Translations under genes and position numbers: made by a program | Shown here: piece after piece, positions 1,653 through 64,000 of the stretch | How positions within the stretch are numbered: position 1 is the stretch's first letter | Layout: every line of letters begins with the position of its first letter | Notes under the pieces: generated by a model | Told to the model about the DNA's origin: nothing | Seen by the model: only the letters and a program-made list of their open reading frames with translations | Database searches by the model: none | Assembly (NCBI GenBank): GCA_965649825.1 | Contig: OZ287715.1 | Location: 121,766-185,765 of the forward strand | From: Penicillus capitatus | Lineage: Eukaryota; Plantae; Chlorophyta | DNA length: 64,000 nucleotides | Direction: 5' to 3'

Positions 1653-4600
1653 ATGGATACAAGATACTTTGGTGGTTGCGGCGATCCCTCTAACCCAGGA
1701 TTCCTCGCGACAGGGTTTGACCAGATGAACCCGTTGTCGGTGTTCGACCAAGGGTATCCTCCTCAAAATCACACGAGTCCTGCGTGGTTTGGCTATTCCC
1801 CGAGTCAGGCACCTCAGCGTTTTCCGTTCGTTCCGCCGTCGCCTGTTGGAACGCCATTCGTCGACCTGTCCGGCGAGTCTGTTGGCTGGGGTGGCCAAAT
1901 GATTCCAGACAATAGTGGGTATCGTATTCCATGGTTCGGGAAGACCAAAGGAAAAGGGAACAATACAAGGGGTGGTCGAAGGGGTCGCAACAACAATGGC
2001 AATAATGATCACCATTATCAGCAGCAGCATCAACAACGAAACAGATCACAATGGAATCGAAACAGACGCAGCCATGAAGGTCTGCCTGCTGAGTCTGATG
2101 ACGTCTTGACAGTGGAAGACATCATACGCATGGTTCGCAATTCTCCTGAAAACGCACCCCTTGCGCATGATATCTATCAGAGCATTCGTCATTTTGACAG
2201 TCGTACATGCTCGGTGCTTTTGAAAGATCTCAGCAAATTGGGACTGGGTATGAGGGCCATGGAGATCTTTGACTGGTTAAGGAATTCAGATGAGGCTAAA
2301 GATCTTAAAAGCCTTTGTGATGTCTATACCTACACTGCAATGATTTCTATGTGCATCTATCAACAAGACGTAGACAGAGCATTGCGTCTTGTTGAAGAAA
2401 TGCACGAGAGACGGATCCAAAGAAATGTTCATACCTATACAGCCTTGATGAATGTCTGTATCAAATGCGGAAGGTGTCAGTTGGCGCTGGAGTCCTACAG
2501 GAACATGCGTGAAGACGGCATTGCACCCAATGTGGTGACCTACAACACACTTATTGATATTTATGGAAAGATGGGCCAATGGGAACAGGCTGTCAAGGTC
2601 TTGGTCGACATGAAGAGTGAGGTCAGTCGCAGTGCCTCTGTACATTAGGTATCTGCTCACACGTGTGTTGCTGCTATCAGGGTGTCGAGGCTGTACTGAG
2701 AACATACAACACCTTGATCATTTCGTGCAACATGTGCAATCAGCCAAGAGAGGCTCTGGCTGTGTACAATAGGCTTTTGTCCGAGGGTTTCTGTCCAAAC
2801 GCTACAACGTACAACGCATTGATCTCTGCCTATGGCAAAGCTGGGCAGCTCGACAAGGTCATGGAAGTCTTTCAAGAAATGGTCTGGAAGGGATGCGAGA
2901 GAAGTGTCATCACGTACAGTTCCTTGATTTCTGCCTGTGAGAAAGCGGGTCAGTGGGAGATTGCACTGCAGCTCTTCAATGAAATGCAACACGAAGGATG
3001 CATTCCAAACACTGTGACATACAACTCTCTTATCACAGCCTGCGCCCAAGGTACTTTAACTGAATGCCGACAACGCATCGCGTGAGCACATTTTTGACCT
3101 GATAGGGGCTCAGTGGGAGAAGGCATGTGACGTGTTTGAGCAAATGCGTGTCCAAGGCTGTGCCCCAGACGTCGTCACCTACACGGCGCTTATTAGCGCG
3201 AACGAAAGAGGCGGTCAATGGAGACGCGCTCTCCAGGCATACGAAGAAATGCTCACTCAAGATTGCAAACCGGATGCCATTGTCTACAATGCCATTATCG
3301 ATGCTGTCTGGGAAACTGGTGTCATTTGGGCTCAGCGAAAAGCACTCACAATTTTCGAGTGTGCCAGAAGGCAAGGGCACTTTAAACAGCAACCAATCCG
3401 AAACGTCCATCGAGCAGAAGTCAATCTTCATGCACTGACGGCTGGAGTCGCTGTAATGAGTCTGTACAGCTGGCTGTTAGATTTGAAGTACATACACATA
3501 TGCTCTTACTCATTCACTAACTCTATACTGTGTCCTCTCTTCAGGATACTGGCGTTGAGAGAGGGAGCTCAAGCACTTCCTGTCCAGCTGTGTATCGTGA
3601 CGGATAAGGGACGTACGAGTAAGGAACAAGGAAACTTAGTTGTCAAGGAGGCTGTGGCTGCAATGATGAACTCATGGGGAGCTCCATTCAGGCCCATGCA
3701 CGATTCGATGTATGCAGGCGTCCTGGAAGCATCGGGACGAGACGTAGCTTTGTGGTTGAGTGAAGAACGTTTTGAAGAACGACTTTTTGGGTTTTTCCCC
3801 TGCACGAATCTCCTCCCTTCTAATGCAAATAAGGTAATGATGTGACGTCTTTTACTGTTCTGTCATCTGACGACGGTGTCTGTCCAGTTACCCTTCAAAG
3901 AGGGATTGGCAACGGACATTCCAGTTTTGGCAGATGATCCTTCCTTTGCCAACGAGGCCGCCGTCGAGACGCGGTGCACTGAGGCATTTGCTGCTGTTCA
4001 TCATTTTGAGAGTTCCCATTCTCTGACTCTTCAAGCAATGGGTTTGGCGTACTTACAGCACAGAACCGTCCTCGTGCAGCAGTTGTTTCAATATGGAAAG
4101 AAGCTCAATCTTAGAGAAGAGGTTGCTCACGATGCCGTTCTGCTGATGGACAGAGCCATGTCGACATCCATTCAAATCAAAGAGAACCTCCTGGAACTTC
4201 TGTCTGTCGCATGCCTGGTGCTTGCAATGAAGCAGACTGAGAAGCTTGAGGATCTGCCCAGTGACGAGACTTTGGAACAAGTGACAGACTGCAAGGCATC
4301 CGCAGTTGGCAAAATGGAATGGAATCTGCGTCAGGTTTTAGGAAGCGACACATCAGCCATCTCAACACTGCGCTGCATCATGCTTTATCTGGAAAGACTG
4401 GGATCTCATCTCTTGGATGCACCTTCTGCTTCAGAAGTCTCTGGAGGTGCAGTGGCCTTGGTCGAAAGATCGATGTCCGATCTCACCTTCCTGAACTGCA
4501 GGCCCTCTGTTGTCGCAGCAGCGATACTGTATGCAGAGAGACGTTCTAGAGGCGTGATTCCCTACTGGCCATCGATGTTGGCAAAGCTGACTGGATATCA

Positions 4601-20262: not shown

Positions 20263-21267
<1,005 letters not shown>

Positions 21268-41148: not shown

Positions 41149-42640
41149 TCATGCATCGAGGAACGTGATTGGAGCGTTTCCGTATGCAGATTCTACAGTG
41201 GTTCCTGGCACCTGCAGCTGAAATGCAGTAGCCATGGGCTCATGTTCTCTGCTGCACCTCGGCGCTTGATTTGCTGAGTGGTTCATCGACAGCGTGGAAG
41301 ATTGTAAATGAACATTTCCATCAAAATCCATCCGTGACAGAACCCGATGGCTGGCACACTGGTTTGGAGACTTCGCCCAGTTTCTGGCGGCAGCTCTGAA
41401 GGCCTGTCAGATCCAATGCGTTGATAGGCATCGATCGACATGGCAACGAGATAACCTCTCTGCGATGAATAGTCGGACTGGTTGCCATGATATGTTTCAT
41501 CTCTTGGCGCATGTAAGTGTTGTATGGTGAAAGATTCCTGCTGGATTTTGCTTTTGTTCTCTTATGCTTGGTCCTTGCTGAGCCTACATCCCCGTATTTC
41601 GCAGAGGCCTCAGCTAGAGGGAACTTGCTGGCGATGAGGGTCGGACGAATGTTGTCCAAACACTGTCGCTCCTTTACAGTTCTCTTGATCTCTCCGTCCA
41701 CAGCAGCCTGCTACACATCGTATGAGAGGACAGTGATGCCAATACCCATTCCATGCACACGCATATTGATTTTGGGCTCCCTCACCCTTGGACGCCTTGT
41801 TAACGGACGTGGGACTTCGAGCATTTCCAGAGAAATACGTGATCCACCCTGCATGGGTAGTTCGGCAGCACAAATCATTCGCGTCTCCTTCGTCTGTACA
41901 ATGGGCCGATGTGCTGCGGACATCACTCTCGAATGGTCTGCCATATTGCTGTTCCCAGTGGAAACGACCTCTGCTGCGCGTGATGCAGGCCAAGCCTTCA
42001 TCGTCAAGATATGGACATGGAGTGAATGAATGATTTGTGGTCTTACATATGTCGTTGCAGCGTCTTCCACTTTTCTTTCTCTCCTGACTCGGTATGGCGC
42101 AAGTGCTCGATCAAGATTAACTTCCAGAAGCCTAAGAACATGGAATCTCAACTTGGCGGTTGAAGCATGAGTTGACGACCTGCGACATGCGCCACAACGC
42201 ACGATGGCTGGACTCTCGTACTCGCGGAATGGGTCAACGTAAACCTGAACAATGCAGAGTGATTCAGTAATCCTTGCGCGTGTCTATGCGACACTGCAGA
42301 GACAATGCCGTTGAATGGCAAGAAACAGATAGGAAATTCGCCGTGTCTCAGTACGCAGGATGAGAAGTGAGAACATGCATTTACAACAAAAATAGCATGG
42401 ACCTCTGCTGAAAAAGAAGATCGGCATGCTTTGTATTGAGCTAGGCAACGAAACATGTGAAAACAGTGTACTTGAAGCAGTGCATTGCAGTCTGACGCTT
42501 CACAATGTACACGTAAGGGCATGCGGCTATTCAATCGCCGACAGACAGGCGTGGCCATAGTCATACTCAAAACTCTCACTGAGGTCTGAATCGAAGAAGT
42601 AGTATTCGAGTAACCGCAGACGAGGTGACGTAACGGTCAT
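41149..42640 (-). CDS. YABBY-family transcription factor (C2C2 zinc finger + YABBY HMG-like domain)
   Basis: Spliced RVHCEASDCNALLQ|VYVDPFREYESPAIVRCGACR|RLLEVNL (exons 42526-42472, 42244-42180, from 42131) and LSPYNTYMRQEMKHIMATSPTIHRRE|AFRAAARNWAKSP (intron 41404-41455). All junctions are GT-AG and in frame; start codon uncertain. Confidence 0.85.
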
Positions 42641-46400: not shown

Positions 46401-47031
46401 TAGCACCGACGTTTTTTTCTTCTTGAACAAGATCAGAGATCTTGTGCGAGGGAACACTCTTTGCCTGTCTCGTCATTCTGCCAGTTGTTCGAAGTCTTCT
46501 CAGTCGAAAACTACTGACCTCGCAACAGAACTCTGACAATTTGAGATGATGGGTAGAATTGTGGCTAAGGTCAATTTTCTGTTCGGACAACCGGTTTAAC
46601 AGAGGTTTGTCCTAAAGCTGCACGCAATGCTACAGGGAAGAACTGTAGACTACAGCAACGGTTTTCTGGACATCAGGATACCTACTGAAACGGAACTGGA
46701 ATTCATGCTTCTATCATGGCGAATCGGTTCAGTCATTATCATCATCCAGAATTCAGGTGCGGGCAGGTGCGAACATCGACCTCAATGATCTACTGCGAAG
46801 TCTTCACGAATTCTCAGCAGTCTTGAGACGACATTGAGGTGCTCACTGTAACGGATGGATGGATCTGCGATATATCGACCGTTGGCCATGAAATGGCGAT
46901 CGTGTTGGGATTGTTTGCATTAGTTGAGTGCAATGACTCAGATGCCATGTGTCGGAATGCGAACTCGGTCTTCGCCATTGTTTTCCGCCGTCTGAGAGAA
47001 TATCTCTGTCTTCGACATTGTTTTCCGCCGT

Positions 47032-48353
47032 TTGATAGAATATCGGTGTTGTGTCATTCGCACAACAGAGAAAGCTCTCACGTTGCCATTCAAGACTGCC
47101 TCACGCCTGGACCACGGGAGGCCCCCCCCCTGGACCACGGGAGGCCCCCCCCTGGACCACGGGAGGCCCCCCCTGGACCACGGGAGGCCCCCCCTGGACC
47201 ACGGGAGGCCCCCCCTGGACCACGGGAGGCCCCCCCTGGACCACGGGAGGCCCCCCCCCCTGGACCACGGGAGGCCCCCCCCCCTGGACCACGGGAGGCC
47301 CCCCCCCCTGGACCACGGGAGGCCCCCCCCCCTGGACCACGGGAGGCCCCCCCCCCTGGACCACGGGAGGCCCCCCCCCTGGACCACGGGAGGCCCCCCC
47401 CCCTGGACCACGGGAGGCCCCCCCCCCTGGACCACGGGAGGCCCCCCCTGGACCGTCCTTCATCATCAACGGTGTCGACAAATCAAGCACAGTGGGAAGA
47501 AATCAGGGAAAAGCTGATCAAGAACACAGAGATACATGAACTCCCTCCATCCGAAGCACAGAAGACCATACGTGAAATCACGCGCCTCAAGCGAAGAAAC
47601 CCGGACACTGAAGAGCTCGAGGACTCGTTCACGATACGCGTCCACGCCAACGAGACGACAACGGCAGCGTCCCTTTACCAGGGTCTCCGGGTCCGATACC
47701 CTGAAGAACAAGGTCCACCGCGTGATACGAAGAATCATGCAAGAGACAGACGAAATGTCATCCTGGACCGCGTTTGCGAACTTCTGGATCGGGGCGTTGA
47801 ACGCTGAAAACATTCTACCTGTGGAAAGCCAACCGAAGAAGTTGGAAGTCTTGAATGCAGTTCTCAAGATCAGTCGCGAGAGAAAGTCGGCGTGGCGTGT
47901 GAAGAGAATCGGCGAAAGACACGGTCAGTTCTTCATTAACGTCTGCTACTCGGTTGGCAACCCCTCAGACGCAGCACCAGGCGCAGGACCAGGATCAGAC
48001 TCAGGATCACATCTTAGCCGTTGACGCTCGAAGCCGTTTTCGAAGAAGCTTTTAGAGAATGTTTTTTTACACCAAAAAGTACAATCGTTAGGTCGGTGCT
48101 GGGAAAGCCGTCCTTGTCCACTTGTCTCCATAAGACGAGATCGTCGGCATACATCTGGCAGCACATTCTTCCTGTCGATAACCACGAGCGGAAGCTCGAG
48201 GTTTTGAATGCCGTCTGGAAGATCAGTCGCGAAAGCATATCGTTTTGGCATGTGAATCGCACCAAAGACCGCTACGGGATACTCTTCACGAACATTTGCT
48301 ATTTAGTTGGGCGCTCAGGCACAGGCACAGGCCCAGATCTGAGTCCTTGTTGA
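47032..48353 (+). pseudogene. Fragmented orphan ORF(s) carrying the VNTR and a twice-repeated ~50-aa domain
   Basis: ORFs 47536-48024 and 48021-48353 share ILPV...KLEVLNAV.KISRE....W.V.R.....G..F.N.CY.VG. The pieces lie in different frames. Confidence 0.4.
47106..47453 (+). repeat. VNTR of TGGACCACGGGAGG + C(7-10), 15 full units
   Basis: Counted C-run lengths 9,8,7,7,7,7,10,10,10,10,10,9,10,10,7, giving 21-24 nt units. Confidence 0.97.
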
Positions 48354-48520
48354 GGTTCGCGTGAAGCCGTCCGTGAAAGAGAGAAGCTTTAGTATTAATT
48401 TGCTCTACACCACTGAGTACCTGACGAGAATCGGTTGTCGTACCCGGCCGCGAGGTCGTCAAGCGCGCAGCGACACCGTCCTCACTCTAAGAATGCTGTC
48501 CGGGGACACTCCAGCAAGGT

Positions 48521-48915
48521 GTTGCATCGGCCAAGTCGTTTGGAGAACATGCGGAACCTTCCCGTGCACCCCCATGCGGACCCGTTCAGCGGTTCAGCGG
48601 CTCGTCACATCAGATTTCCAGCTCCGGGTCCGGCAACGAGTCGGCCGCCACCGAGCACGTGAACCAGCTCAGAACACTCCTACCAGCATCCCTGTTGCAT
48701 CGGCCAAGTCGTTTGGAGAACATGCGGAACCTTCCCGTGTACCCCCATGCGGACCCGTTCAGCGGTTCAGCGGGTCGTCACATCAGATTTCCACCAACCG
48801 GCCGGGCAACGAGTCGGCCGCCACCGAGCACGTGAACCAGCTCAGAACACTCCTACCAGCATCCCAGTTGCTTCGGCCAAGTCGTTTGGAGAACATGCAG
48901 GACCTCCCGGAGCGT
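48521..48915 (+). repeat. 173-bp tandem repeat (2 full copies + partial) at the satellite's proximal edge
   Basis: GTTGC(A/T)TCGGCCAAGTCGTTTGGAGAACATGC starts at 48521, 48694 and 48867. Confidence 0.92.
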
Positions 48916-51900
48916 TAATGTGCTCGAGCATTCTAGCGCACACCATCCGTCGGTCGCCGGAGGAACAAGGGTCCCCCCTTTGCTTCGCAACCGTAGCAAA
49001 TGTGTCAGCGCCGGAGGGAACAAGGGTCCCCCCTTTGCTTCGCAACCGTAGCAAATGTGTCAGCGCCGGAGGAACAAGGGTCCCCCCTTTGCTTCAATTG
49101 TTGCGACCCTCAACTACGGTTACAATTGTTGCGACCCTCAACTACGGTTATAAATGTTGCGACCTCAACTACGGTTATAAATGTTGCGACCCGCCGGAGG
49201 GAACAAGGGTCCCCCCTTTGCTTCGCATCCTCGCACCACCCGTCGGTCGCCGGAGGGTACAAGGGTCCCCCCTTTGCTTCAATTGTTACGATCCTCAACT
49301 ACGGTTATAAATGTTGCGACCCTCAACTACGGTTATAATTGTTGCGACCCGCCGGAGGGTACTAGGGTCCCCCCTTTGCTTCGCATCCTCGCACCACCCG
49401 TCGGTCGCCGGAGGAACAAGGGTCCCCCCTTTGCTTCAATTGTTACGATCCTCAACTACGGTTATAAATGTTGCGACCCTCAACTACGGTTATAAATGTT
49501 GCGACCCGCCGGAGGGAACAAGGGTCCCCCCTTTGCTTCGCATCCTCGCACCACCCGTCGGTCGCCGGAGGAACAAGGGTCCCCCCTTGCTTCGCAACCG
49601 TAGCAAATGTGTCGTCATCCCAACCGTAGCAAATGTGTCATCCCAACCGTAGCAGATGTGTCGGTCGCCGAGGTAACAAGGGTCCCCCCTTTGCTTCAAT
49701 TGTTACGACCCGACGCAGGGTACAAGGGTCCCCCCTTTGCTTCAATTGTTACGACCCGACGCAGGGTACAAGGGTCCCCCCTTTGCTTCAATTGTTACGA
49801 CCCGCAGCCGCCGGCGACTTGAGGACCTCGATGGATGCAAACCTGCACGTGGATGCACATGGTGAACTTCTAGGAACATCCCAGTTGCTTCGGCCAAGTC
49901 GTTTGGAGAACATGCGGACCCTCCCGGAGCGCAAACGTGCTCGAGCATTCCAGCGCACACCATCCGTCGGTCGCCGGAGGAACAAGGGTCCCCCCTTGCT
50001 TCGCAACCGTAGCAAATGTGTCATCCCAACCGTAGCAAATGTGTCATCCCAACCGTAGCAAATGTGTCATCCCAACCGTAGCAAATGTGTCATCCCAACC
50101 GTAGCAAATGTGTCATCCCAACCGTAGCAGATGTGTCGGTCGCCGAGGTAACAAGGGTCCCCCCTTTGCTTCAATTGTTACGACCCGCAGCCGCCGGCGA
50201 CTTGAGGACCTCGATGGATGCAAACCTGCACGTGGATGCACATGGTGAACTTCTAGGAACATCCCAGTTGCTTCGGCCAAGTCGCTTGGAGAACATGCGG
50301 ACCCTCCCGGAGCGCTAACGTGCTCGAGCATTCTAGCGCACACCATCCGTCGGTCGCCGGAGGAACAAGGGTCCCCCCTTGCTTCGCAACCGTAGCAAAT
50401 GTGTCATCCCAACCGTAGCAAATGTGTCATCCCAACCGTAGCAGATGTGTCGGTCGCCGAGGTAACAAGGGTCCCCCCTTTGCTTCAATTGTCACGACCC
50501 GACGCAGGGTACAAGGGTCCCCCCTTTGCTTCAATTGTTACGACCCGCAGCCGCCGGCAACTTGAGGACCTCGATGGATGCAAACCTGCACGTGGATGCA
50601 CATGGTGAACTTCTAGGAACATCCCAGTTGCTTCGGCCAAGTCGCTTGGAGAACATGCGGACCCTCCCGGAGCGCTAACGTGCTCGAGCATTCTAGCGCA
50701 CACCATCCGTCGGTCGCCGGAGGAACAAGGGTCCCCCCTTTGCTTCGCAACCGTAGCAAATGTGTCAGCGCCGGAGGGAACAAGGGTCCCCCCTTTGCTT
50801 CGCAACCGTAGCAAATGTGTCAGCGCCGGAGGAACAAGGGTCCCCCCTTTGCTTCAATTGTTGCGACCCTCAACTACGGTTACAATTGTTGCGACCCTCA
50901 ACTACGGTTATAAATGTTGCGACCTCAACTACGGTTATAAATGTTGCGACCCGCCGGAGGGAACAAGGGTCCCCCCTTTGCTTCGCATCCTCGCACCACC
51001 CGTCGGTCGCCGGAGGGTACAAGGGTCCCCCCTTTGCTTCAATTGTTACGATCCTCAACTACGGTTATAAATGTTGCGACCCTCAACTACGGTTATAAAT
51101 GTTGCGACCCGCCGGAGGGTACTAGGGTCCCCCCTTTGCTTCGCATCCTCGCACCACCCGTCGGTCGCCGGAGGAACAAGGGTCCCCCCTTTGCTTCAAT
51201 TGTTACGATCCTCAACTACGGTTATAAATGTTGCGACCCTCAACTACGGTTATAAATGTTGCGACCCGCCGGAGGGAACAAGGGTCCCCCCTTTGCTTCG
51301 CATCCTCGCACCACCCGTCGGTCGCCGGAGGGTACAAGGGTCCCCCCTTTGCTTCAATTGTTACGATCCTCAACTACGGTTATAAATGTTGCGACCCTCA
51401 ACTACGGTTATAAATGTTGCGACCCGCCGGAGGGAACAAGGGTCCCCCCTTTGCTTCGCATCCTCGCACCACCCGTCGGTCGCCGGAGGGTACAAGGGTC
51501 CCCCCTTTGCTTCAATTGTTACGATCCTCAACTACGGTTATAAATGTTGCGACCCTCAACTACGGTTATAAATGTTGCGACCCGCCGGAGGGTACTAGGG
51601 TCCCCCCTTTGCTTCGCATCCTCGCACCACCCGTCGGTCGCCGGAGGAACAAGGGTCCCCCCTTTGCTTCAATTGTTACGATCCTCAACTACGGTTATAA
51701 ATGTTGCGACCCTCAACTACGGTTATAAATGTTGCGACCCGCCGGAGGGAACAAGGGTCCCCCCTTTGCTTCGCATCCTCGCACCACCCGTCGGTCGCCG
51801 GAGGAACAAGGGTCCCCCCTTGCTTCGCAACCGTAGCAAATGTGTCGTCATCCCAACCGTAGCAAATGTGTCATCCCAACCGTAGCAGATGTGTCATCCC

Positions 51901-54900
51901 AACCGTAGCAGATGTGTCGGTCGCCGAGGTAACAAGGGTCCCCCCTTTGCTTCAATTGTTACGACCCGACGCAGGGTACAAGGGTCCCCCCTTTGCTTCA
52001 ATTGTTACGACCCGACGCAGGGTACAAGGGTCCCCCCTTGCTTCGCAACCGTAGCAAATGTGTCATCCCAACCGTAGCAAATGTGTCATCCCAACCGTAG
52101 CAAATGTGTCATCCCAACCGTAGCAGATGTGTCGGTCGCCGAGGTAACAAGGGTCCCCCCTTTGCTTCAATTGTTACGACCCGACGCAGGGTACAAGGGT
52201 CCCCCCTTTGCTTCAATTGTTACGACCCGACGCAGGGTACAAGGGTCCCCCCTTTGCTTCAACTGTTACGACCCGCAGCCGCCGGCGACTTGAGGACCTC
52301 GATGGATGCAAACCTGCACGTGGATGCACATGGTGAACTTCTAGGAACATCCCAGTTGCTTCGGCCAAGTCGTTTGGAGAACATGCGGACCCTCCCGGAG
52401 CGCAAACGTGCTCGAGCATTCCAGCGCACACCATCCGTCGGTCGCCGAGGTAACAAGGGTCCCCCCTTTGCTTCAATTGTTACGACCCGACGCAGGGTAC
52501 AAGGGTCCCCCCTTTGCTTCAACTGTTACGACCCGCAGCCGCCGGCGACTTGAGGACCTCGATGGATGCAAACCTGCACGTGGATGCACATGGTGAACTT
52601 CTAGGAACATCCCAGTTGCTTCGGCCAAGTCGCTTGGAGAATATGCGGACCCTCCCGGAGCGCTAACGTGCTCGAGCATTCTAGCACACACCATCCGTCG
52701 GTCGCCGGAGGAACAAGGGTCCCCCCTTTGCTTCAATTGTTACGACCCGACGCAGGGTACAAGGGTCCCCCCTTTGCTTCAATTGTTACGACCTGCAGCC
52801 GCCGGCGACTTGAGGACCTCGATGGATGCAAACCTGCACGTGGATGCACATGGTGAACTTCTAGGAACATCCCAGTTGCTTCGGCCAAGTCGCTTGGAGA
52901 ACATGCGGACCCTCCCGGAGCGCTAACGTGCTCGAGCATTCTAGCGCACACCATCCGTCGGTCGCCGGAGGAACAAGGGTCCCCCTTGCTTCGCAACCGT
53001 AGCAAATGTGTCATCCCAACCGTAGCAGATGTGTCATCCCAACCGTAGCATATGTGTCGGTCGCCGAGGTAACAAGGGTCCCCCTTTGCTTCAATTGTTA
53101 CGACCCGACGCAGGGTACAAGGGTCCCCCCTTTGCTTCAATTGTTACGACCCGACGCAGGGTACAAGGGTCCCCCCTTTGCTTCAATTGTTACGACCCGC
53201 AGCCGCCGGCGACTTGAGGACCTCGATGGATGCAAACCTGCACGTGGATGCACATGGTGAACTTCTAGGAACATCCCAGTTGCTTCGGCCAAGTCGTTTG
53301 GAGAACATGCGGACCCTCCCGGAGCGCAAACGTGCTCGAGCATTCCAGCGCACACCATCCGTCGGTCGCCGGAGGAACAAGGGTCCCCCCTTGCTTCGCA
53401 ACCGTAGCAAATGTGTCATCGCAACCGTAGCAAATGTGTCATCCCAACCGTAGCAGATGTGTCATCCCAACCGTAGCAAATGTGTCATCCCAACCGTAGC
53501 AGATGTGTCGGTCGCCGAGGTAACAAGGGTCCCCCCTTTGCTTCAATTGTTACGACCCGACGCAGGGTACAAGGGTCCCCCCTTTGCTTCAACTGTTACG
53601 ACCCGCAGCCGCCGGCGACTTGAGGACCTCGATGGATGCAAACCTGCACGTGGATGCACATGGTGAACTTCTAGGAACATCCCAGTTGCTTCGGCCAAGT
53701 CGTTTGGAGAACATGCGGACCCTCCCGGAGCGCAAACGTGCTCGAGCATTCCAGCGCACACCATCCGTCGGTCGCCGAGGTAACAAGGGTCCCCCCTTTG
53801 CTTCAATTGTTACGACCCGACGCAGGGTACAAGGGTCCCCCCTTTGCTTCAACTGTTACGACCCGCAGCCGCCGGCGACTTGAGGACCTCGATGGATGCA
53901 AACCTGCACGTGGATGCACATGGTGAACTTCTAGGAACATCCCAGTTGCTTCGGCCAAGTCGCTTGGAGAATATGCGGACCCTCCCGGAGCGCTAACGTG
54001 CTCGAGCATTCTAGCACACACCATCCGTCGGTCGCCGGAGGAACAAGGGTCCCCCCTTTGCTTCAATTGTTACGACCCGACGCAGGGTACAAGGGTCCCC
54101 CCTTTGCTTCAATTGTTACGACCTGCAGCCGCCGGCGACTTGAGGACCTCGATGGATGCAAACCTGCACGTGGATGCACATGGTGAACTTCTAGGAACAT
54201 CCCAGTTGCTTCGGCCAAGTCGCTTGGAGAACATGCGGACCCTCCCGGAGCGCAAACGTGCTCGAGCATTCCAGCGCACACCATCCGTCGGTCGCCGGAG
54301 GAACAAGGGTCCCCCCTTGCTTCAATTGTTACGATCCTCAACTACGGTTATAAATGTTGCGACCCTCAACTACGGTTATAAATGTTGCGACCCGCCGGAG
54401 GGAACAAGGGTCCCCCCTTTGCTTCGCATCCTCGCACCACCCGTCGGTCGCCGGAGGGTACAAGGGTCCCCCCTTTGCTTCAATTGTTACGATCCTCAAC
54501 TACGGTTATAAATGTTGCGACCCGCCGGAGGGAACAAGGGTCCCCCCTTTGCTTCGCATCCTCGCACCACCCGTCGGTCGCCGGAGGGTACAAGGGTCCC
54601 CCCTTTGCTTCAATTGTTACGATCCTCAACTACGGTTATAAATGTTGCGACCCTCAACTACGGTTATAAATGTTGCGACCCGCCGGAGGGAACAAGGGTC
54701 CCCCCTTTGCTTCGCATCCTCGCAGCACACCCGTCGGTCGCCGGAGGGTACAAGGGTCCCCCCTTTGCTTCAATTGTTACGATCCTCAACTACGGTTATA
54801 AATGTTGCGACCCTCAACTACGGTTATAAATGTTGCGACCCGCCGGAGGGTACTAGGGTCCCCCCTTTGCTTCGCATCCCTCGCACCACCCGTCGGTCGC

Positions 54901-57900
54901 CGGAGGAACAAGGGTCCCCCCTTTGCTTCAATTGTTACGATCCTCAACTACGGTTATAAATGTTGCGACCCTCAACTACGGTTATAAATGTTGCGACCCG
55001 CCGGAGGGAACAAGGGTCCCCCCTTTGCTTCGCATCCTCGCACCACCCGTCGGTCGCCGGAGGAACAAGGGTCCCCCCTTGCTTCGCAACCGTAGCAAAT
55101 GTGTCGTCATCCCAACCGTAGCAAATGTGTCATCCCAACCGTAGCAGATGTGTCATCCCAACCGTAGCAGATGTGTCGGTCGCCGAGGTAACAAGGGTCC
55201 CCCCTTTGCTTCAATTGTTACGACCCGACGCAGGGTACAAGGGTCCCCCCTTTGCTTCAATTGTTACGACCCGACGCAGGGTACAAGGGTCCCCCTTGCT
55301 TCGCAACCGTAGCAAATGTGTCATCCCAACCGTAGCAAATGTGTCATCCCAACCGTAGCAAATGTGTCATCCCAACCGTAGCAGATGTGTCGTCGCCGAG
55401 GTAACAAGGGTCCCCCCTTTGCTTCAATTGTTACGACCCGACGCAGGGTACAAGGGTCCCCCCTTTGCTTCAATTGTTACGACCCGACGCAGGGTACAAG
55501 GGTCCCCCCTTTGCTTCAACTGTTACGACCCGCAGCCGCCGGCGACTTGAGGACCTCGATGGATGCAAACCTGCACGTGGATGCACATGGTGAACTTCTA
55601 GGAACATCCCAGTTGCTTCGGCAAGTCGTTTGGAGAACATGCGGACCCTCCGGAGCGCAAACGTGCTCGAGCATTCCAGCGCACACCATCCGTCGGTCGC
55701 CGAGGTAACAAGGGTCCCCCCTTTGCTTCAATTGTTACGACCCGACGCAGGGTACAAGGGTCCCCCCTTTGCTTCAACTGTTACGACCCGCAGCCGCCGG
55801 CGACTTGAGGACCTCGATGGATGCAAACCTGCACGTGGATGCACATGGTGAACTTCTAGGAACATCCCAGTTGCTTCGGCCAAGTCGCTTGGAGAATATG
55901 CGGACCCTCCCGGAGCGCTAACGTGCTCGAGCATTCTAGCACACACCATCCGTCGGTCGCCGGAGGAACAAGGGTCCCCCCTTTGCTTCAATTGTTACGA
56001 CCTGCAGCCGCCGGCGACTTGAGGACCTCGATGGATGCAAACCTGCACGTGGATGCACATGGTGAACTTCTAGGAACATCCCAGTTGCTTCGGCCAAGTC
56101 GCTTGGAGAACATGCGGACCCTCCCGGAGCGCTAACGTGCTCGAGCATTCTAGCGCACACCATCCGTCGGTCGCCGGAGGAACAAGGGTCCCCCCTTGCT
56201 TCGCAACCGTAGCAAATGTGTCATCCCAACCGTAGCAGATGTGTCATCCCAACCGTAGCATATGTGTCGGTCGCCGAGGTAACAAGGGTCCCCCTTTGCT
56301 TCAATTGTTACGACCCGACGCAGGGTACAAGGGGTCCCCCCTTTGCTTCAATTGTTACGACCCGACGCAGGGTACAAGGGTCCCCCCTTTGCTTCAATTG
56401 TTACGACCCGCAGCCGCCGGCGACTTGAGGACCTCGATGGATGCAAACCTGCACGTGGATGCACATGGTGAACTTCTAGGAACATCCCAGTTGCTTCGGC
56501 CAAGTCGTTTGGAGAACATGCGGACCCTCCCGGAGCGCAAACGTGCTCGAGCATTCCAGCGCACACCATCCGTCGGTCGCCGGAGGAACAAGGGTCCCCC
56601 CTTGCTTCGCAACCGTAGCAAATGTGTCATCGCAACCGTAGCAAATGTGTCATCCCAACCGTAGCAAATGTGTCATCCCAACCGTAGCAGATGTGTCATC
56701 CCAACCGTAGCAGATGTGTCATCCCAACCGTAGCAGATGTGTCATCCCAACCGTAGCAGATGTGTCGGTCGCCGAGGTAACAAGGGTCCCCCCTTTGCTT
56801 CAATTGTTACGACCCGACGCAGGGTACAAGGGTCCCCCCTTTGCTTCAACTGTTACGACCCGCAGCCGCCGGCGACTTGAGGACCTCGATGGATGCAAAC
56901 CTGCACGTGGATGCACATGGTGAACTTCTAGGAACATCCCAGTTGCTTCGGCCAAGTCGTTTGGAGAACATGCGGACCCTCCCGGAGCGCAAACGTGCTC
57001 GAGCATTCCAGCGCACACCATCCGTCGGTCGCCGGAGGAACAAGGGTCCCCCCTTGCTTCGCAACCGTAGCAAATGTGTCATCGCAACCGTAGCAAATGT
57101 GTCATCCCAACCGTAGCAGATGTGTCATCCCAACCGTAGCAAATGTGTCATCCCAACCGTAGCAGATGTGTCGGTCGCCGAGGTAACAAGGGTCCCCCCT
57201 TTGCTTCAATTGTTACGACCCGACGCAGGGTACAAGGGTCCCCCCTTTGCTTCAACTGTTACGACCCGCAGCCGCCGGCGACTTGAGGACCTCGATGGAT
57301 GCAAACCTGCACGTGGATGCACATGGTGAACTTCTAGGAACATCCCAGTTGCTTCGGCCAAGTCGTTTGGAGAACATGCGGACCCTCCCGGAGCGCAAAC
57401 GTGCTCGAGCATTCCAGCGCACACCATCCGTCGGTCGCCGGAGGAACAAGGGTCCCCCCTTGCTTCAATTGTTACGATCCTCAACTACGGTTATAAATGT
57501 TGCGACCCTCAACTACGGTTATAAATGTTGCGACCCGCCGGAGGGAACAAGGGTCCCCCCTTTGCTTCGCATCCTCGCACCACCCGTCGGTCGCCGGAGG
57601 GTACAAGGGTCCCCCCTTTGCTTCAATTGTTACGATCCTCAACTACGGTTATAAATGTGCGACCCTCAACTACGGTTATAATTGTTGCGACCCGCCGGAG
57701 GGTACTAGGGTCCCCCCTTTGCTTCGCATCCTCGCACCACCCGTCGGTCGCCGGAGGAACAAGGGTCCCCCCTTTGCTTCAATTGTTACGATCCTCAACT
57801 ACGGTTATAAATGTTGCGACCCTCAACTACGGTTATAAATGTTGCGACCCGCCGGAGGGAACAAGGGTCCCCCCTTTGCTTCGCATCCTCGCACCACCCG

Positions 57901-60237
57901 TCGGTCGCCGGAGGGTACAAGGGTCCCCCCTTTGCTTCAATTGTTACGATCCTCAACTACGGTTATAAATGTTGCGACCCTCAACTACGGTTATAAATGT
58001 TGCGACCCGCCGGAGGGTACTAGGGTCCCCCCTTTGCTTCGCATCCTCGCACCACCCGTCGGTCGCCGGAGGAACAAGGGTCCCCCCTTTGCTTCAATTG
58101 TTACGATCCTCAACTACGGTTATAAAATGTTGCGACCCTCAACTACGGTTATAAATGTTGCGACCCGCCGGAGGGAACAAGGGTCCCCCTTTGCTTCGCA
58201 TCCTCGCACCACCCGTCGGTCGCCGGAGGAACAAGGGTCCCCCCTTGCTTCGCAACCGTAGCAAATGTGTCGTCATCCCAACCGTAGCAAATGTGTCATC
58301 CCAACCGTAGCAGATGTGTCATCCCAACCGTAGCAGATGTGTCGGTCGCCGAGGTAACAAGGGTCCCCCCTTTGCTTCAATTGTTACGACCCGACGCAGG
58401 GTACAAGGGTCCCCCCTTTGCTTCAATTGTTACGACCCGACGCAGGGTACAAGGGTCCCCCCTTGCTTCGCAACCGTAGCAAATGTGTCATCCCAACCGT
58501 AGCAAATGTGTCATCCCAACCGTAGCAAATGTGTCATCCCAACCGTAGCAGATGTGTCGGTCGCCGAGGTAACAAGGGTCCCCCCCTTTGCTTCAATTGT
58601 TACGACCCGACGCAGGGTACAAGGGTCCCCCCTTTGCTTCAATTGTTACGACCCGACGCAGGGTACAAGGGTCCCCCCTTTGCTTCAACTGTTACGACCC
58701 GCAGCCGCCGGCGACTTGAGGACCTCGATGGATGCAAACCTGCACGTGGATGCACATGGTGAACTTCTAGGAACATCCAGTTGCTTCGGCCAAGTCGTTT
58801 GGAGAACATGCGGACCCTCCCGGAGCGCAAACGTGCTCGAGCATTCCAGCGCACACCATCCGTCGGTCGCCGAGGTAACAAGGGTCCCCCTTTGCTTCAA
58901 TTGTTACGACCCGACGCAGGGTACAAGGGTCCCCCCTTTGCTTCAACTGTTACGACCCGCAGCCGCCGGCGACTTGAGGACCTCGATGGATGCAAACCTG
59001 CACGTGGATGCACATGGTGAACTTCTAGGAACATCCCAGTTGCTTCGGCCAAGTCGCTTGGAGAATATGCGGACCCTCCCGGAGCGCTAACGTGCTCGAG
59101 CATTCTAGCACACACCATCCGTCGGTCGCCGGAGGAACAAGGGTCCCCCCTTTGCTTCAATTGTTACGACCCGACGCAGGGTACAAGGGTCCCCCCTTTG
59201 CTTCAATTGTTACGACCTGCAGCCGCCGGCGACTTGAGGACCTCGATGGATGCAAACCTGCACGTGGATGCACATGGTGAACTTCTAGGAACATCCCAGT
59301 TGCTTCGGCCAAGTCGCTTGGAGAACATGCGGACCCTCCCGGAGCGCTAACGTGCTCGAGCATTCTAGCGCACACCATCCGTCGGTCGCCGGAGGAACAA
59401 GGGTCCCCCCTTGCTTCGCAACCGTAGCAAATGTGTCATCCCAACCGTAGCAGATGTGTCATCCCAACCGTAGCATATGTGTCGGTCGCCGAGGTAACAA
59501 GGGTCCCCCTTTGCTTCAATTGTTACGACCCGACGCAGGGTACAAGGGTCCCCCCTTTGCTTCAATTGTTACGACCCGACGCAGGGTACAAGGGTCCCCC
59601 TTTGCTTCAATTGTTACGACCCGCAGCCGCCGGCGACTTGAGGACCTCGATGGATGCAAACCTGCACGTGGATGCACATGGTGAACTTCTAGGAACATCC
59701 CAGTTGCTTCGGCCAAGTCGTTTGGAGAACATGCGGACCCTCCCGGAGCGCAAACGTGCTCGAGCATTCCAGCGCACACCATCCGTCGGTCGCCGGAGGA
59801 ACAAGGGTCCCCCCTTGCTTCGCAACCGTAGCAAATGTGTCATCGCAACCGTAGCAAATGTGTCATCCCAACCGTAGCAAATGTGTCATCCCAACCGTAG
59901 CAGATGTGTCATCCCAACCGTAGCAGATGTGTCATCCCAACCGTAGCAGATGTGTCGGTCGCCGAGGTAACAAGGGTCCCCCCTTTGCTTCAATTGTTAC
60001 GACCCGACGCAGGGTACAAGGGTCCCCCCTTTGCTTCAACTGTTACGACCCGCAGCCGCCGGCGACTTGAGGACCTCGATGGATGCAAACCTGCACGTGG
60101 ATGCACATGGTGAACTTCTAGGAACATCCCAGTTGCTTCGGCCAAGTCGTTTGGAGAACATGCGGACCCTCCCGGAGCGCAAACGTGCTCGAGCATTCCA
60201 GCGCACACCATCCGTCGGTCGCCGGAGGAACAAGGGT
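48867..60237 (+). repeat. Complex modular satellite with a 20-bp core (AAGGGTCCCCCCTTTGCTTC), internal 23- and 28-bp subrepeats, and a ~3.2 kb higher-order repeat
   Basis: Modules of 46, 56, 102 and 214 bp plus a variable (23-mer)n module, each beginning with the core. Identical variant sites recur at ~3210-bp spacing. Confidence 0.97.
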
Positions 60238-63200
60238 AGTTTGATAATAAATAGTTGATTGACCTTCTCCTGCATTGTCAGATATAACCACGTCATAAGA
60301 GGTAATATCACACTCTGGTCCAGTTACATAATGGTTTTCAAAACAATAAGTCAATTCAACCAATCCTTCTCCAACGTATTCCACATTTTGATAAATCATA
60401 CACCAAAAATCTTCTTGGCAATCCATAAACCGGACCTTGAAAGTGGCAGGGCATTCTTCACCAGTTTCTTCGTCACAAAGAATGATAGTACCTGTCAATC
60501 CTTCATTTGCTACATAATAGTCCCAATCGGTAATATGTAGGAATGCGTTCAATTTAATTCATTCCACCAGGAAATATTGATGTAGGCATGGTTTAGAATG
60601 TTTAAGTATCCGCCATAATCAATGGTAGGGAAGTTACCACAGAATATATAGCCATCCGGGATCATCATTGTTACGGAATACCAATTGAAATAATCAAAAG
60701 GGTTCATATCGGCCATATTCAAACTAATAATCACTTCATCTACCGTGTTACCACCTAATACACAGCCAAAAGAATGAACTGTAAAGCTGGTTTCTAATTC
60801 TTCCGGACAATTGCTGCTGCAAATAAGTACTTCCAGACAGAATTCGTCAGAACTTACCTGACATCCTCCGTCATTGATGTGAAGGGTAATTTTGCCTGCC
60901 ATGGCAGTAGTCAGTGTTAAAGGGGTAATACTTCCAGAACCAGTGTTTAGGATGGAAATACTTCCACTTTCATCTTCCAATTGCCATTCCCAAGAGCTAA
61001 AAGACCCTGGTATCCCATTTAAAATGATATTGTTTTTATCAAGCGTTGTATCACAATATTCATAACATCCACTTAAAAAGGAAGTGAAATCAATGGCGTT
61101 ATCCACAATAGTGGTGGTATTAGATGAACAGCCATTTTCATCGGTGTAGGTAACCGAATAAAAACCATTTTGGCCCGGATAGATGCATTGATCCGTAAAG
61201 TTGACGATATTGGTACCCGACCAAACTACCTCTGTATATGGTGAAGCACAAAGTTCAATGGAATAAGGTTCACAATTAATCGGACCTTCAATGATCTCTG
61301 GGGGAGCAGGATTCCCAAATACGGTTATGGTCGTACTTAATTCAGCACACTCCGTACCTCCGGTACCTAAGGCAATTACCCGGATATCATAAGTGCCAGG
61401 TGAAAAAATACTTAAATCCGGGCCGTTTTCAATGTAACTGGCTGGAATAGGGTTGATTTCCCAATCATAGGTATAACCTTGGGCCGGAGTTACTGATAAA
61501 AAGGCTCCGGAACAGCCATCAATAGCTCCCATAATCCCGGTGGCAAAAGGATCAAATAATTGAAGAGGTAGCGGTTCAGGAACAAAATTACATCCATTAA
61601 CATCTGTGATAGTGACAAAATAAACATCGCTAACCATTACATACGGATTTGGAAGTGTTTCCTGTCCTGTTGGAACAGGACTCCATGAATAAGAAACAAT
61701 AGCTGGACTACCGGGATCTGGATCAAAGGATAATTCCGCCGAAGCACTGCAATCCATATAATCAAAAGAAATTTCTCCATCCATGGTATTTACGGCTATA
61801 TCATATTCTGACTAGATTGGACCGTACATCCGTAAATGGATTCAACCTGTAAATTTTACCTGGTAAGCGTTGGCAGTATTATAAGTTTTGAAAGGTTCGT
61901 AAAGCTGGCTAAACGAACCATCTCCAAAATCCCATAATACGTTCAAAACAAGCTCTTCCTGTAGGTTAGGAGTAAATTGGATGGCTTGTCCTTCACAAGT
62001 CCCAGTTTGAGAGAAACTAAATTCGGCGGAAGGAGAAGCAGGTACTATGATATCATGGCACTGTGCGCATTTGTATGGCTGAAACCCAGTTGAACCTATT
62101 CTTAGACAAGCAGAAATAGTACTTCCGGGAGAAACCCCCGCAATATTGATGGAAGATCCTGTTCCACCTTGTTGATTTCCTCCATCAATTTGATAAACCC
62201 ATTCTTGTTCAACCTGTGTAGGATCCTCGAAATAATTGGATATATCATTGAGCGTGACATCATATTTATCCGGATCAGCGCTACAATCAAAATTCCATTC
62301 GAAATCCGTAATAAAGGGAATTACCACCTGCTCAAAATCACTATCTTCGCAAAGCAATTCAATAGGTTGACCCGTTTCGGGATCTTTCACAACTTCTGTA
62401 CTAATATTTACTATACAAAGGGAATTGGGATCGTAGCTACAGAAGTCCTCAAATTCAAGGATCTGTCCAGAGCACGTTTCAATAAAAACTTGAATATCCA
62501 ACTGAGTTTCAAAGGCAGAGAGCCAAACCCCGTAAACACCGGGTAAGTCTCCTAATACCAGATTGTTTTGGATGAGTTCTCCCTGATTTGAAATAGGTAT
62601 GCTAGAAAAAGTATTGTCCGGCCTTCTTATTAGCCAACGAGGAGCGTAGGCGTCATCAAAATCTGTTATGGTTCCGGAAATATCAATTGCTGCACAAGGG
62701 TCTTGCTGTGAGGCAAAAGACCATTGATCGATGGTTATGGTAATATCATTATCCGGGGGAAGGGAGTCGCAGCAAGGAGTTTCACAATTGTAAAATACTG
62801 GCTCATCATCTGTGTTGGAACAAACACCATTATCCACGATTACGCTATAGTTCCCTGTTTCTGTTATGGTCACAGGTGGGGGACAATCCAGGCAAAACAC
62901 TACACCATCTTTATACCAATCATATGTATAACTAGGATTGAAAGGGATTACATTTAATTGGGAGGTAAAAGGAGTTCCTTCGGGGCAAGGGAGGAAATCC
63001 AAAAAGATAATTTCAGGTTCCGGATTGGCAATAATATCGATAAAATACACTGCTGCCGGCACACCAAAACATCCATTTGGCCGAATGGCCTTTAGAATTA
63101 CCTGATGTTGCCCCGGCGTTTCGAAAATGTAATCTAAAGTGGGGGCATTCCCTCCGGGACAGGCATTCCGTCGACTTCCCACATATAACTATCTGCGGTT

Positions 63201-64000
63201 GTTGCATTGGAGGAAAAAGTAACCGTCTCTCCCTGGCAAGCCTGAGGAGGGCCCACTATTTCTAATTCAAAGGGGGTTAAGGTGACCACTAATTGGTTGG
63301 AGACATTTTGATTACAAACAGACGAAGAAACACTTATAGTAACATCCATTGGGGTTGGATGGTAAAGCCACTGAATTTCCACCTCATCGGTGTTTTGTCC
63401 TGTAACGATACTTCCAAGTGCCGGATCGATCGACCATTGGTAATTAAATCCTCCTGAAACAGATGCAGTATAGGATTCGTAACTGTCGGGACATGGTGTT
63501 TGATTCCCTATAATTTCAATCTCCGGAGTCGTAATTGCCGTAACCATATAGACCGCCGTATCGGAATTACAACTGGCACCTTGATACATGGTTTCGCGCC
63601 AAACCCATATTTCATTATCCGGAGAATCTACGGTCCAGTTATAACTGGTAAAATTTCCCGATTTTTCAGTTGGGATTCCATCTTCCCAAAAAACCCAATG
63701 GATAATATCGAAAGGAACATTATCAAAAACAAAGTAAGTGTACGTTTGATTTAAACACACTTCCGTCGGACCATTAAAGTTCATGATCTCCGGACTTTCC
63801 AACACTTCAATGGCAAAGGTGGAAGGACAAATCGTGCTACCTCCAATAGTAACTTGTACTTCCAAGCTGTAAATGCCTGGTTCGTCAAATAGGTCGCCAG
63901 ATAAATCTACATCTGGCCCCTCTTGGTCTGAGTCGAATAGTATTTCGGCCCCTTGATAAAGCGTCCACCTTATAGTCCCATTTGGAATCGGGCTAAGGGC
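60238..64000 (-). CDS. Bacterial (Bacteroidota-type) large PKD/PKD-like repeat surface protein, broken by indels, truncated at the satellite junction and open at the window end
   Basis: Intronless, AT-richer DNA. Pieces 63134-64000, 61842-63182, 60549-61784 and 60238-60552 read as one protein with EIIGNQTPC...YQWSI...GSIVTGQNTDEVEIQW (PKD-like), VLWDFGDGSFS..EPFKTY (PKD) and YSVTYTDENGCS repeats. Confidence 0.85.

Follow-up and report, generated by a model that had tools for sequence, protein, structure and literature searches.

A putative YABBY gene of five exons

The minus strand of a 64,000-nucleotide (nt) stretch of contig OZ287715.1 (the whole stretch of DNA that was analysed, referred to here as the window) contains, between positions 42564 and 41149, a gene that is assigned, with a probability of roughly 85%, to the YABBY transcription-factor family, namely, a nuclear, single-copy gene of a green alga, with five exons, that would encode a protein of 337 residues. 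Such factors are known for their part in making leaves flat. An earlier reading of the letters, made without database searches (the sequence-only reading), had proposed that positions 41149-42640 hold a complete two-domain YABBY gene in a chlorophyte-type genome. That region, as quoted, is to be read as its reverse complement, since the gene lies on the minus strand. So read, both domains are predicted in the order seen in YABBY proteins, on one strand and connected by in-frame canonical introns, in agreement with the proposal of a complete gene. The components of the gene model are given below, with exon-intron boundaries marked by a slash and with P0001 denoting the closest database homologue of the encoded protein.

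42472-42564, minus strand: coding exon 1, residues 1-31; ATG at 42564; first zinc knuckle C21-x4-C26 (codons 42502-42504 and 42487-42489)
42245-42471, minus strand: intron 1, 227 nt, phase 0, CAAG/GTACAC...TTGTTCAG/GT; P0001 aligns on either side
42180-42244, minus strand: coding exon 2, residues 32-53 (last codon partial), VYVDPFREYESPAIVRCGACR; second knuckle C48-x2-C51
42132-42179, minus strand: intron 2, 48 nt, phase 2, GCAG/GTCGTC...GTTCTTAG/G
41786-42131, minus strand: coding exon 3, residues 53-168; end of the finger (LLEVNL), predicted helix of residues 59-80, disordered linker
41954-41974 and 41795-41812, minus strand: linker motifs AEVVSTG and PRPLTR, respectively, within exon 3, both conserved with P0001
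41711-41785, minus strand: intron 3, 75 nt, phase 0, AAGG/GTGAGG...GATGTGTAG/CAG; absent from the list of introns in the sequence-only reading
41456-41710, minus strand: coding exon 4, residues 169-253; linker, basic arm RTKHKRTKAK (41546-41575), start of the YABBY domain (41456-41563), ending TIHRRE
41404-41455, minus strand: intron 4, 52 nt, phase 0, AGAG/GTTATC...TCTGACAG/GC; interrupts the YABBY domain after HRRE and before AFRAAARNW
41149-41403, minus strand: coding exon 5, residues 254-337 and TGA (41149-41151); YABBY helix 2, AFRAAARNWAKSPN (41362-41403), and an unconserved tail

In this model (model A), the coding sequence runs from 42564 to 41149 and comprises 1014 nt, that is, 337 codons followed by TGA. 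The coding sequence starts at the ATG at 42564 rather than at 42640, the 5' limit of the region originally quoted, with a stop codon being found in frame 5' of this ATG; a fragment ORF (open reading frame) in the database, P0008, begins at the identical methionine. Introns 1, 2 and 4 correspond to those originally proposed, and all three are indeed of the GT-AG type and in frame. Three introns do not, however, suffice, as the frame so generated meets a TAG at 41711-41713 (...LSYDV-stop-QAAVDG...), and a fourth intron is therefore required. When all in-frame GT...AG removals were listed, the best candidate for this intron was 41711-41785. The acceptor of this intron is tandem (TAG/CAG), leaving an ambiguity of one codon that affects neither domain. 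On the exonic side, all of the donors end in AG or GG. The division of the finger over three exons, as had been described, is borne out by the exon model, and both the C-x4-C...C-x2-C finger and the peptides quoted with it are present on the minus strand, with the reconstructed junctions reading ...PLRVHCEASDCNALLQ/VYVDPFREYESPAIVRCGACR(R)/LLEVNL... and ...SPYNTYMRQEMKHIMATSPTIHRRE/AFRAAARNWAK. That the gene was missed by the ORF track reflects the fact that the source record bears only prokaryote-style gene calls.

Support for this splicing pattern came from a relative. An exhaustive phmmer search of 1.84 billion representative proteins (E ≤ 1e-3) returned 95 matches, the best of which, P0001 (E 1.7e-29), is an uninterrupted ORF of 324 residues on a 1273-nt contig from run SRR28002475, apparently a transcript. 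When compared to the window protein by BLASTP, P0001 yielded a single high-scoring segment pair (HSP) covering residues 15-279 (36% identity, E 3e-46). When P0001 was instead aligned to the genomic DNA by tblastn, the alignment was interrupted at introns 1 and 4, resuming beyond each, and presented a 16-residue gap exactly at intron 2 and a 22-residue gap inside the 25-codon interval of intron 3. At the level of sequence, the alignment with P0001 is independent cross-species support for the predicted splice model and for both domains being encoded by a single predicted mRNA.

Two other ways of reading the locus were tried and rejected. In the first (model B), the donor TAT/GTAAGA at 42046 would be used with removal up to 41711, such that most of exon 3 would be skipped and a protein of 250 residues produced. 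The skipped motifs are, however, conserved, with AEVVSTG and VPRPLTRR corresponding to AETVSTG and KPRPLSR in P0001, and with PPPLSR or PPPLTR being found in Bryopsis and Caulerpa. In the second, TAG would be read as glutamine, rendering intron 3 needless; here, too, the alignment with P0001 argues otherwise, being gapped at this position. None of the 104 glutamine codons in a neighbouring ORF of 810 codons is TAA or TAG, and the standard genetic code is indicated. An additional in-frame intron of 51 nt in exon 3 (42046-41996; TAT/GTAAGA...GATGAAG/G) is possible and would affect neither domain.

Several observations on gene structure in the window stand beside this model. A RabA/Rab11-like GTPase gene on the minus strand (~20400-20950) includes two GT-AG introns of ~55 and ~80 nt with splice sites of similar appearance, and introns of 48-75 nt can therefore be considered as normal in this genome. 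Of 15 long ORFs checked between window positions 1 and 46000, nine end with TGA, including all of the likely true gene ends (SUN, uL22m, GYF, cyclin and YABBY). No enrichment of TGTAA, the chlorophyte polyadenylation signal, was detected 3' of stop codons, and no second copy of the YABBY gene was found within the window.

The possibility that the locus is a pseudogene, that is, a decaying or silent sequence in which exons can still be recognised yet neither expression nor splicing into a working mRNA takes place, is improbable. One in-frame TAG must be spliced away and a strong donor-like GTAAGA lies within exon 3, yet once the four canonical introns are removed, neither a frameshift nor a stop codon interrupts the 337 codons, the four cysteines of the finger and all of the family-invariant residues are intact, and the linker motifs are conserved with P0001. 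Codon composition is, moreover, that of the surroundings, with the GC content at third codon positions being 0.49, equal to that of four neighbouring genes.

The two predicted domains

The C-terminal region of the predicted protein (residues 218-267) was matched by the Pfam YABBY profile PF04690 with 44.3 bits (full model), 43.7 bits (a shorter model) or 47.9 bits (the domain alone), as compared to a cut-off of 28.6 and with E-values of 2e-12 to 2e-11, in line with what the sequence-only reading would lead one to expect of such a comparison. All of the columns that are invariant in a 43-sequence family alignment are retained, namely, S229, Y231, N232, E238, F255, A258, A259 and W262. An AlphaFold2 model built from the family alignment was confident over residues 221-270 (pLDDT, the predicted local distance difference test score, of 83-98), with helices at residues 230-245 and 251-264. 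According to this model, residues 221-270 are a helix-loop-helix YABBY domain. A sequence search of the PDB revealed no YABBY structure.

In the N-terminal region, the four cysteines of the finger are all intact and are spaced C21-x4-C26-x21-C48-x2-C51. The top Pfam match in this region was YABBY_N (PF24868; residues 19-64, 22.4-25.8 bits, E 8e-6 to 9e-5), followed by Zn_ribbon_12 as a secondary match. When a profile of nine chlorophyte fingers was compared to one of fourteen land-plant fingers using hhalign, the two were related with a probability of 97.1% (E 5.5e-11; 43% identity over 40 columns). The AlphaFold2 model was confident over residues 11-80 (pLDDT 82-96), where four short strands are followed by a helix (residues 59-80), and this segment is, as modelled, a zinc-ribbon-like finger. 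The linker that separates the two domains comprises ~150 residues and is disordered in the AlphaFold2 model, with motifs that are conserved in relatives.

Given that YABBY domains resemble HMG boxes, the predicted protein could be viewed as a generic HMG-box or HMG-like protein that carries an unrelated zinc ribbon and lies outside the YABBY family, a view deemed very unlikely. Although HMG_box (PF00505) is a secondary Pfam match, its score of 14.5-18.2 bits is under the cut-off of 25.4 and ~30 bits poorer than that of YABBY, such that the outcome that had been expected to undo the YABBY assignment, i.e., placement of the C-terminal domain with HMG boxes, was not observed in the Pfam comparison. 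Similarly, HMG boxes (TOX, TFAM, UBF and SOX) were the top Foldseek matches in the PDB, with their first two helices superposing on the two C-domain helices of the model (~42 residues, ~1.7 Å, E of at least 1), whereas the third helix of an HMG box is not predicted here and HMG-box proteins have no YABBY finger. While Zn_ribbon_12 is matched by the finger and PF04690 also matches small fungal proteins, the finger profile resembles that of land-plant YABBYs with 97% probability and named YABBYs match both domains in order.

The small fungal proteins in question (P0108-P0111; 64-90 residues) come from the Glomeromycota Rhizophagus clarus, R. irregularis and Funneliformis caledonium, score 58-67 bits with PF04690 as compared to 36-38 bits with HMG_box and contain no finger; one is named 'Axial regulator YABBY 4' in UniRef. 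Common descent with HMG boxes, convergent evolution or acquisition from plants could each account for this domain. Another unusual architecture is seen in P0012, a Logan contig product of 204 residues with two YABBY C-domains in tandem (104.8 bits in two stretches) and no finger.

Relatives of the predicted protein

Judging by the Pfam, phmmer and BLASTP E-values, the match of the predicted protein to the YABBY family is far above chance. Homologues containing both domains were found in Bryopsis sp. KO-2023 (GMH40088.1 and GMH35452.1), Chlamydomonas eustigma (GAX78539.1), Trebouxia sp. C0004 (KAL0039631.1) and Chloropicon primus (QDZ21048.1), while relatives with the C-terminal domain were found in Caulerpa lentillifera (g1296 and g8211) and Nannochloris desiccata, as well as in several unnamed marine clusters. 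Two of these already bear the family name, with QDZ21048.1 listed as 'YABBY protein' and GAX78539.1 as 'YABBY protein C-terminal domain-containing protein' (UniRef). The closest relatives are thus chlorophyte proteins, consistent with the genome having been described as chlorophyte-type, and the host is probably a core chlorophyte. The YABBY of Huperzia selago (P0013) and land-plant-type YABBYs aligned to query residues 17-180, with both domains being included, and BLASTP against a land-plant-type YABBY gave two HSPs, in conserved order and each with 44% identity. In a neighbour-joining tree based on 48 C-domain columns, the window protein was grouped with P0001 and the Bryopsis and Caulerpa proteins, with bootstrap values of 32% and 44%. 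A word-index search with a two-domain profile returned seven matches, mostly proteins with the C-domain only; the same type of search with the spliced protein returned zero matches, a result that says nothing on the absence of relatives.

It is hardly credible that two adjacent genes, one for a small zinc ribbon and one for a separate YABBY-domain protein, were falsely fused across the long disordered linker by the model, since even if several relatives (P0005, P0007 and the Caulerpa proteins P0009 and P0010) are annotated with the C-domain only, some of these entries are ORF-style calls made on genomic contigs and liable to miss upstream exons, while two domains are carried by the proteins of Bryopsis, C. 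eustigma, Trebouxia and Chloropicon and the apparent transcript P0001 has both in one ORF that is colinear through the linker.

The assignment of the window gene to the YABBY family by way of its five-exon model must be weighed against several points. The predicted splicing is based on canonical sites together with a relative of 36% overall identity, the bootstrap support in the 48-residue C-domain tree is weak and the Foldseek matches lack significance. The first knuckle of the finger is of the C-x4-C type, corresponding to a two-residue insertion relative to the C-x2-C knuckle of land plants, and the score with YABBY_N is under the gathering cut-off of 28.6. As the named chlorophyte relatives are also weak in this respect (16.9-30 bits), this shortfall reflects a land-plant-centred model and not a defect of the gene. 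Finally, the high PF04690 scores of the Glomeromycota proteins mean that the C-domain alone is insufficient to define a YABBY factor, and a finger and the order of the domains are therefore needed as well; the window gene has both.

Accepting the window gene as encoding a YABBY factor, a manner of action can be proposed by analogy. As in plant YABBYs, whose established properties are in part set out in a review (PMC8074164), the finger would bind one Zn2+ through C21, C26, C48 and C51, and would be expected to bring proteins together, for example, as dimers. Contact with DNA would be made by the basic arm RTKHKRTKAK and the two-helix domain, in a way resembling that of helices 1 and 2 of an HMG box, and the protein would activate or repress transcription in the nucleus.

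Comparison with known YABBY proteins

Where full-length sequences are known, the YABBY-like proteins of core chlorophytes (Bryopsis, Caulerpa, C. eustigma, Trebouxia and P0001) share the arrangement predicted for the window gene, with a finger being followed by a long disordered linker, a basic arm and the YABBY domain. They also share the variant first knuckle CEA.DC (C-x4-C; CEASDC in the window protein) and the linker motif [QRV]P[PR]PL[ST]R, which reads VPRPLTRR in the window protein, where one proline is replaced by arginine. The tail 'NWAKSP..C' of the Bryopsis, Caulerpa and P0001 proteins appears as NWAKSPNQC. Over matched stretches, identity to the window protein is 48-52%, whereas the linker and tail are otherwise unrelated and overall identity to the best relative is no more than 36%. 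The window gene also differs in that an intron lies within its YABBY domain, while the genomic ORFs P0005 and P0007 are continuous through this domain. The knuckle, linker motif and tail of the window protein are all those of the subgroup typified by the Bryopsis, Caulerpa and C. eustigma proteins, a subgroup that is not formally described.

Among prasinophytes, Chloropicon primus QDZ21048.1 is, like the window gene product, a two-domain chlorophyte homologue, although its knuckle is C-x2-C, resembling that of land plants, and its C-domain diverges more strongly (24.9 bits with PF04690). A YABBY-like gene of Micromonas is attributed to Worden et al. 2009 (PMC8074164); Micromonas was not recognised among the database matches obtained. 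Prasinophyte YABBY homologues show that the family is older than land plants.

Land-plant YABBYs (of the FIL/CRC/INO type, HsYABBY of Huperzia selago and that of Anthoceros) comprise two domains in the same order as in the window protein, with 44% identity in each domain and the Huperzia protein matching query residues 19-180. The residues S-x-YN-x-[FY] and P-x-I-x-H-[RK]-EAF-x-x-AA-x-NWA that are typical of land-plant YABBYs are retained in the window protein. By contrast, the land-plant linker spans roughly 60-90 residues, as opposed to ~150 residues in the window protein, and the land-plant tail 'HFPHIHFGL' is replaced by 'KSPNQC'. The role of land-plant YABBYs in leaf or organ polarity cannot be carried over to an alga unchanged.

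The surroundings of the gene in the window

The neighbouring genes, as recognised by Pfam (PPR, cyclin, GYF, Sad1/UNC, kinase, uL22m, Rce1 and P-protein), are ordinary eukaryotic genes. When three neighbouring proteins were joined into a single word-index query, at least two weak SUN-domain matches were returned among the 8000 candidates considered, a result that is likewise silent on the absence of relatives. The PPR-repeat gene is found on the plus strand at 1653-3845 and is made up of two or more ORF blocks (1653-2648 and 3132-3845), the second of which has a C-terminal portion that appears SMR-like by eye; Pfam reported no SMR domain there at E ≤ 0.001. The best PDB match of uL22m was Arabidopsis AT1G52370 (6xyw, 77.6 bits). 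Alongside the affinities of the YABBY gene and the nearby PPR genes, this match forms the limited evidence for a green algal host. No ribosomal RNA, transfer RNA or Rfam families were found in the window.

The single-exon uL22m and Sad1/UNC neighbours are matched exactly in contig ctg340228_45x_l (308,862 bp) of the ENA metagenome assembly ERZ25074695. Because this contig bears prokaryote-style calls, the YABBY gene is represented there only as the fragment P0008. The two gene matches place the end of ctg340228_45x_l at window position ~57751, yet one and the same satellite runs to 60237; as the satellite continues past ~57751, the window is not simply that ENA record.

This satellite (47106-60237) has its start ~4.5 kb upstream of the YABBY gene. 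It is a GC-rich (56%), complex tandem array of ~13 kb with nested units of 23, 46, 157, 260 and 406 nt. It opens with a 24-nt repeat (47106-47448) that corresponds to PGPREAPP repeats in the ORF at 46839-47807, and may be subtelomeric. At 60237/60238, an abrupt junction is seen, where a satellite unit breaks off at ...ACAAGGGT and gives way to DNA of 42% GC. Beyond this point (60549-63865) are long minus-strand ORFs with PKD domains (PF18911 and PF19408) that look bacterial and resemble surface proteins of Bacteroidota; a 411-residue ORF of this region had no entry in the searched protein collection. The junction is probably a chimeric join or the meeting point of two sequences placed end to end.

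YABBY proteins in green algae

In the accessible literature, algal YABBY proteins are described as a single case, that of Micromonas, besides those of hornworts and Huperzia (PMC8074164, PMC8075897 and PMC10030945), and YABBY predictions in red algae are disputed (PMC12567131). No literature on YABBY proteins in Ulvophyceae, Trebouxiophyceae, Chlorophyceae or Chloropicon was found among accessible papers. The statement in the sequence-only reading that the family is only sporadically reported outside seed plants thus holds for the accessible literature (PMC8074164 and PMC12567131), but not for the databases, where homologues from many green algae are present. As such, the gene considered here adds one example to a known family, with similar green-algal genes already being in databases and some of these being named YABBY. 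As judged from the compared sequences, YABBYs are commonly found in chlorophytes, where they make up a recognisable subgroup, a point that is independent of this locus.

At even odds, the gene may come from a chlorophyte lineage not previously sequenced, as suggested by the best relative being just 36% identical overall, and, together with its relatives, may define a chlorophyte-wide YABBY subfamily undescribed in accessible literature. If so, this subfamily would be distinguished by its first knuckle (C-x4-C), its conserved linker motif (P-P-P-L-[ST]-R) and its tail (NWAKSP..C), and would extend over Ulvophyceae, Chlorophyceae and Trebouxiophyceae. The linker motif could serve as a putative partner-docking site. 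Were this the case, two-domain YABBY factors would date back to the ancestor of green plants and would have been kept widely by green algae, and the ancestral, pre-leaf function of the family would become testable, for example, in Bryopsis, where RNA interference is established (PMC12961179).

The locus also illustrates how eukaryotic metagenome contigs with prokaryote-style gene calls hide intron-split regulators such as this YABBY gene. With complete two-domain YABBY genes being common among green algae, giant-celled seaweeds like Bryopsis and Caulerpa included, the question moves from whether algae had a YABBY factor to what its job would be without leaves.

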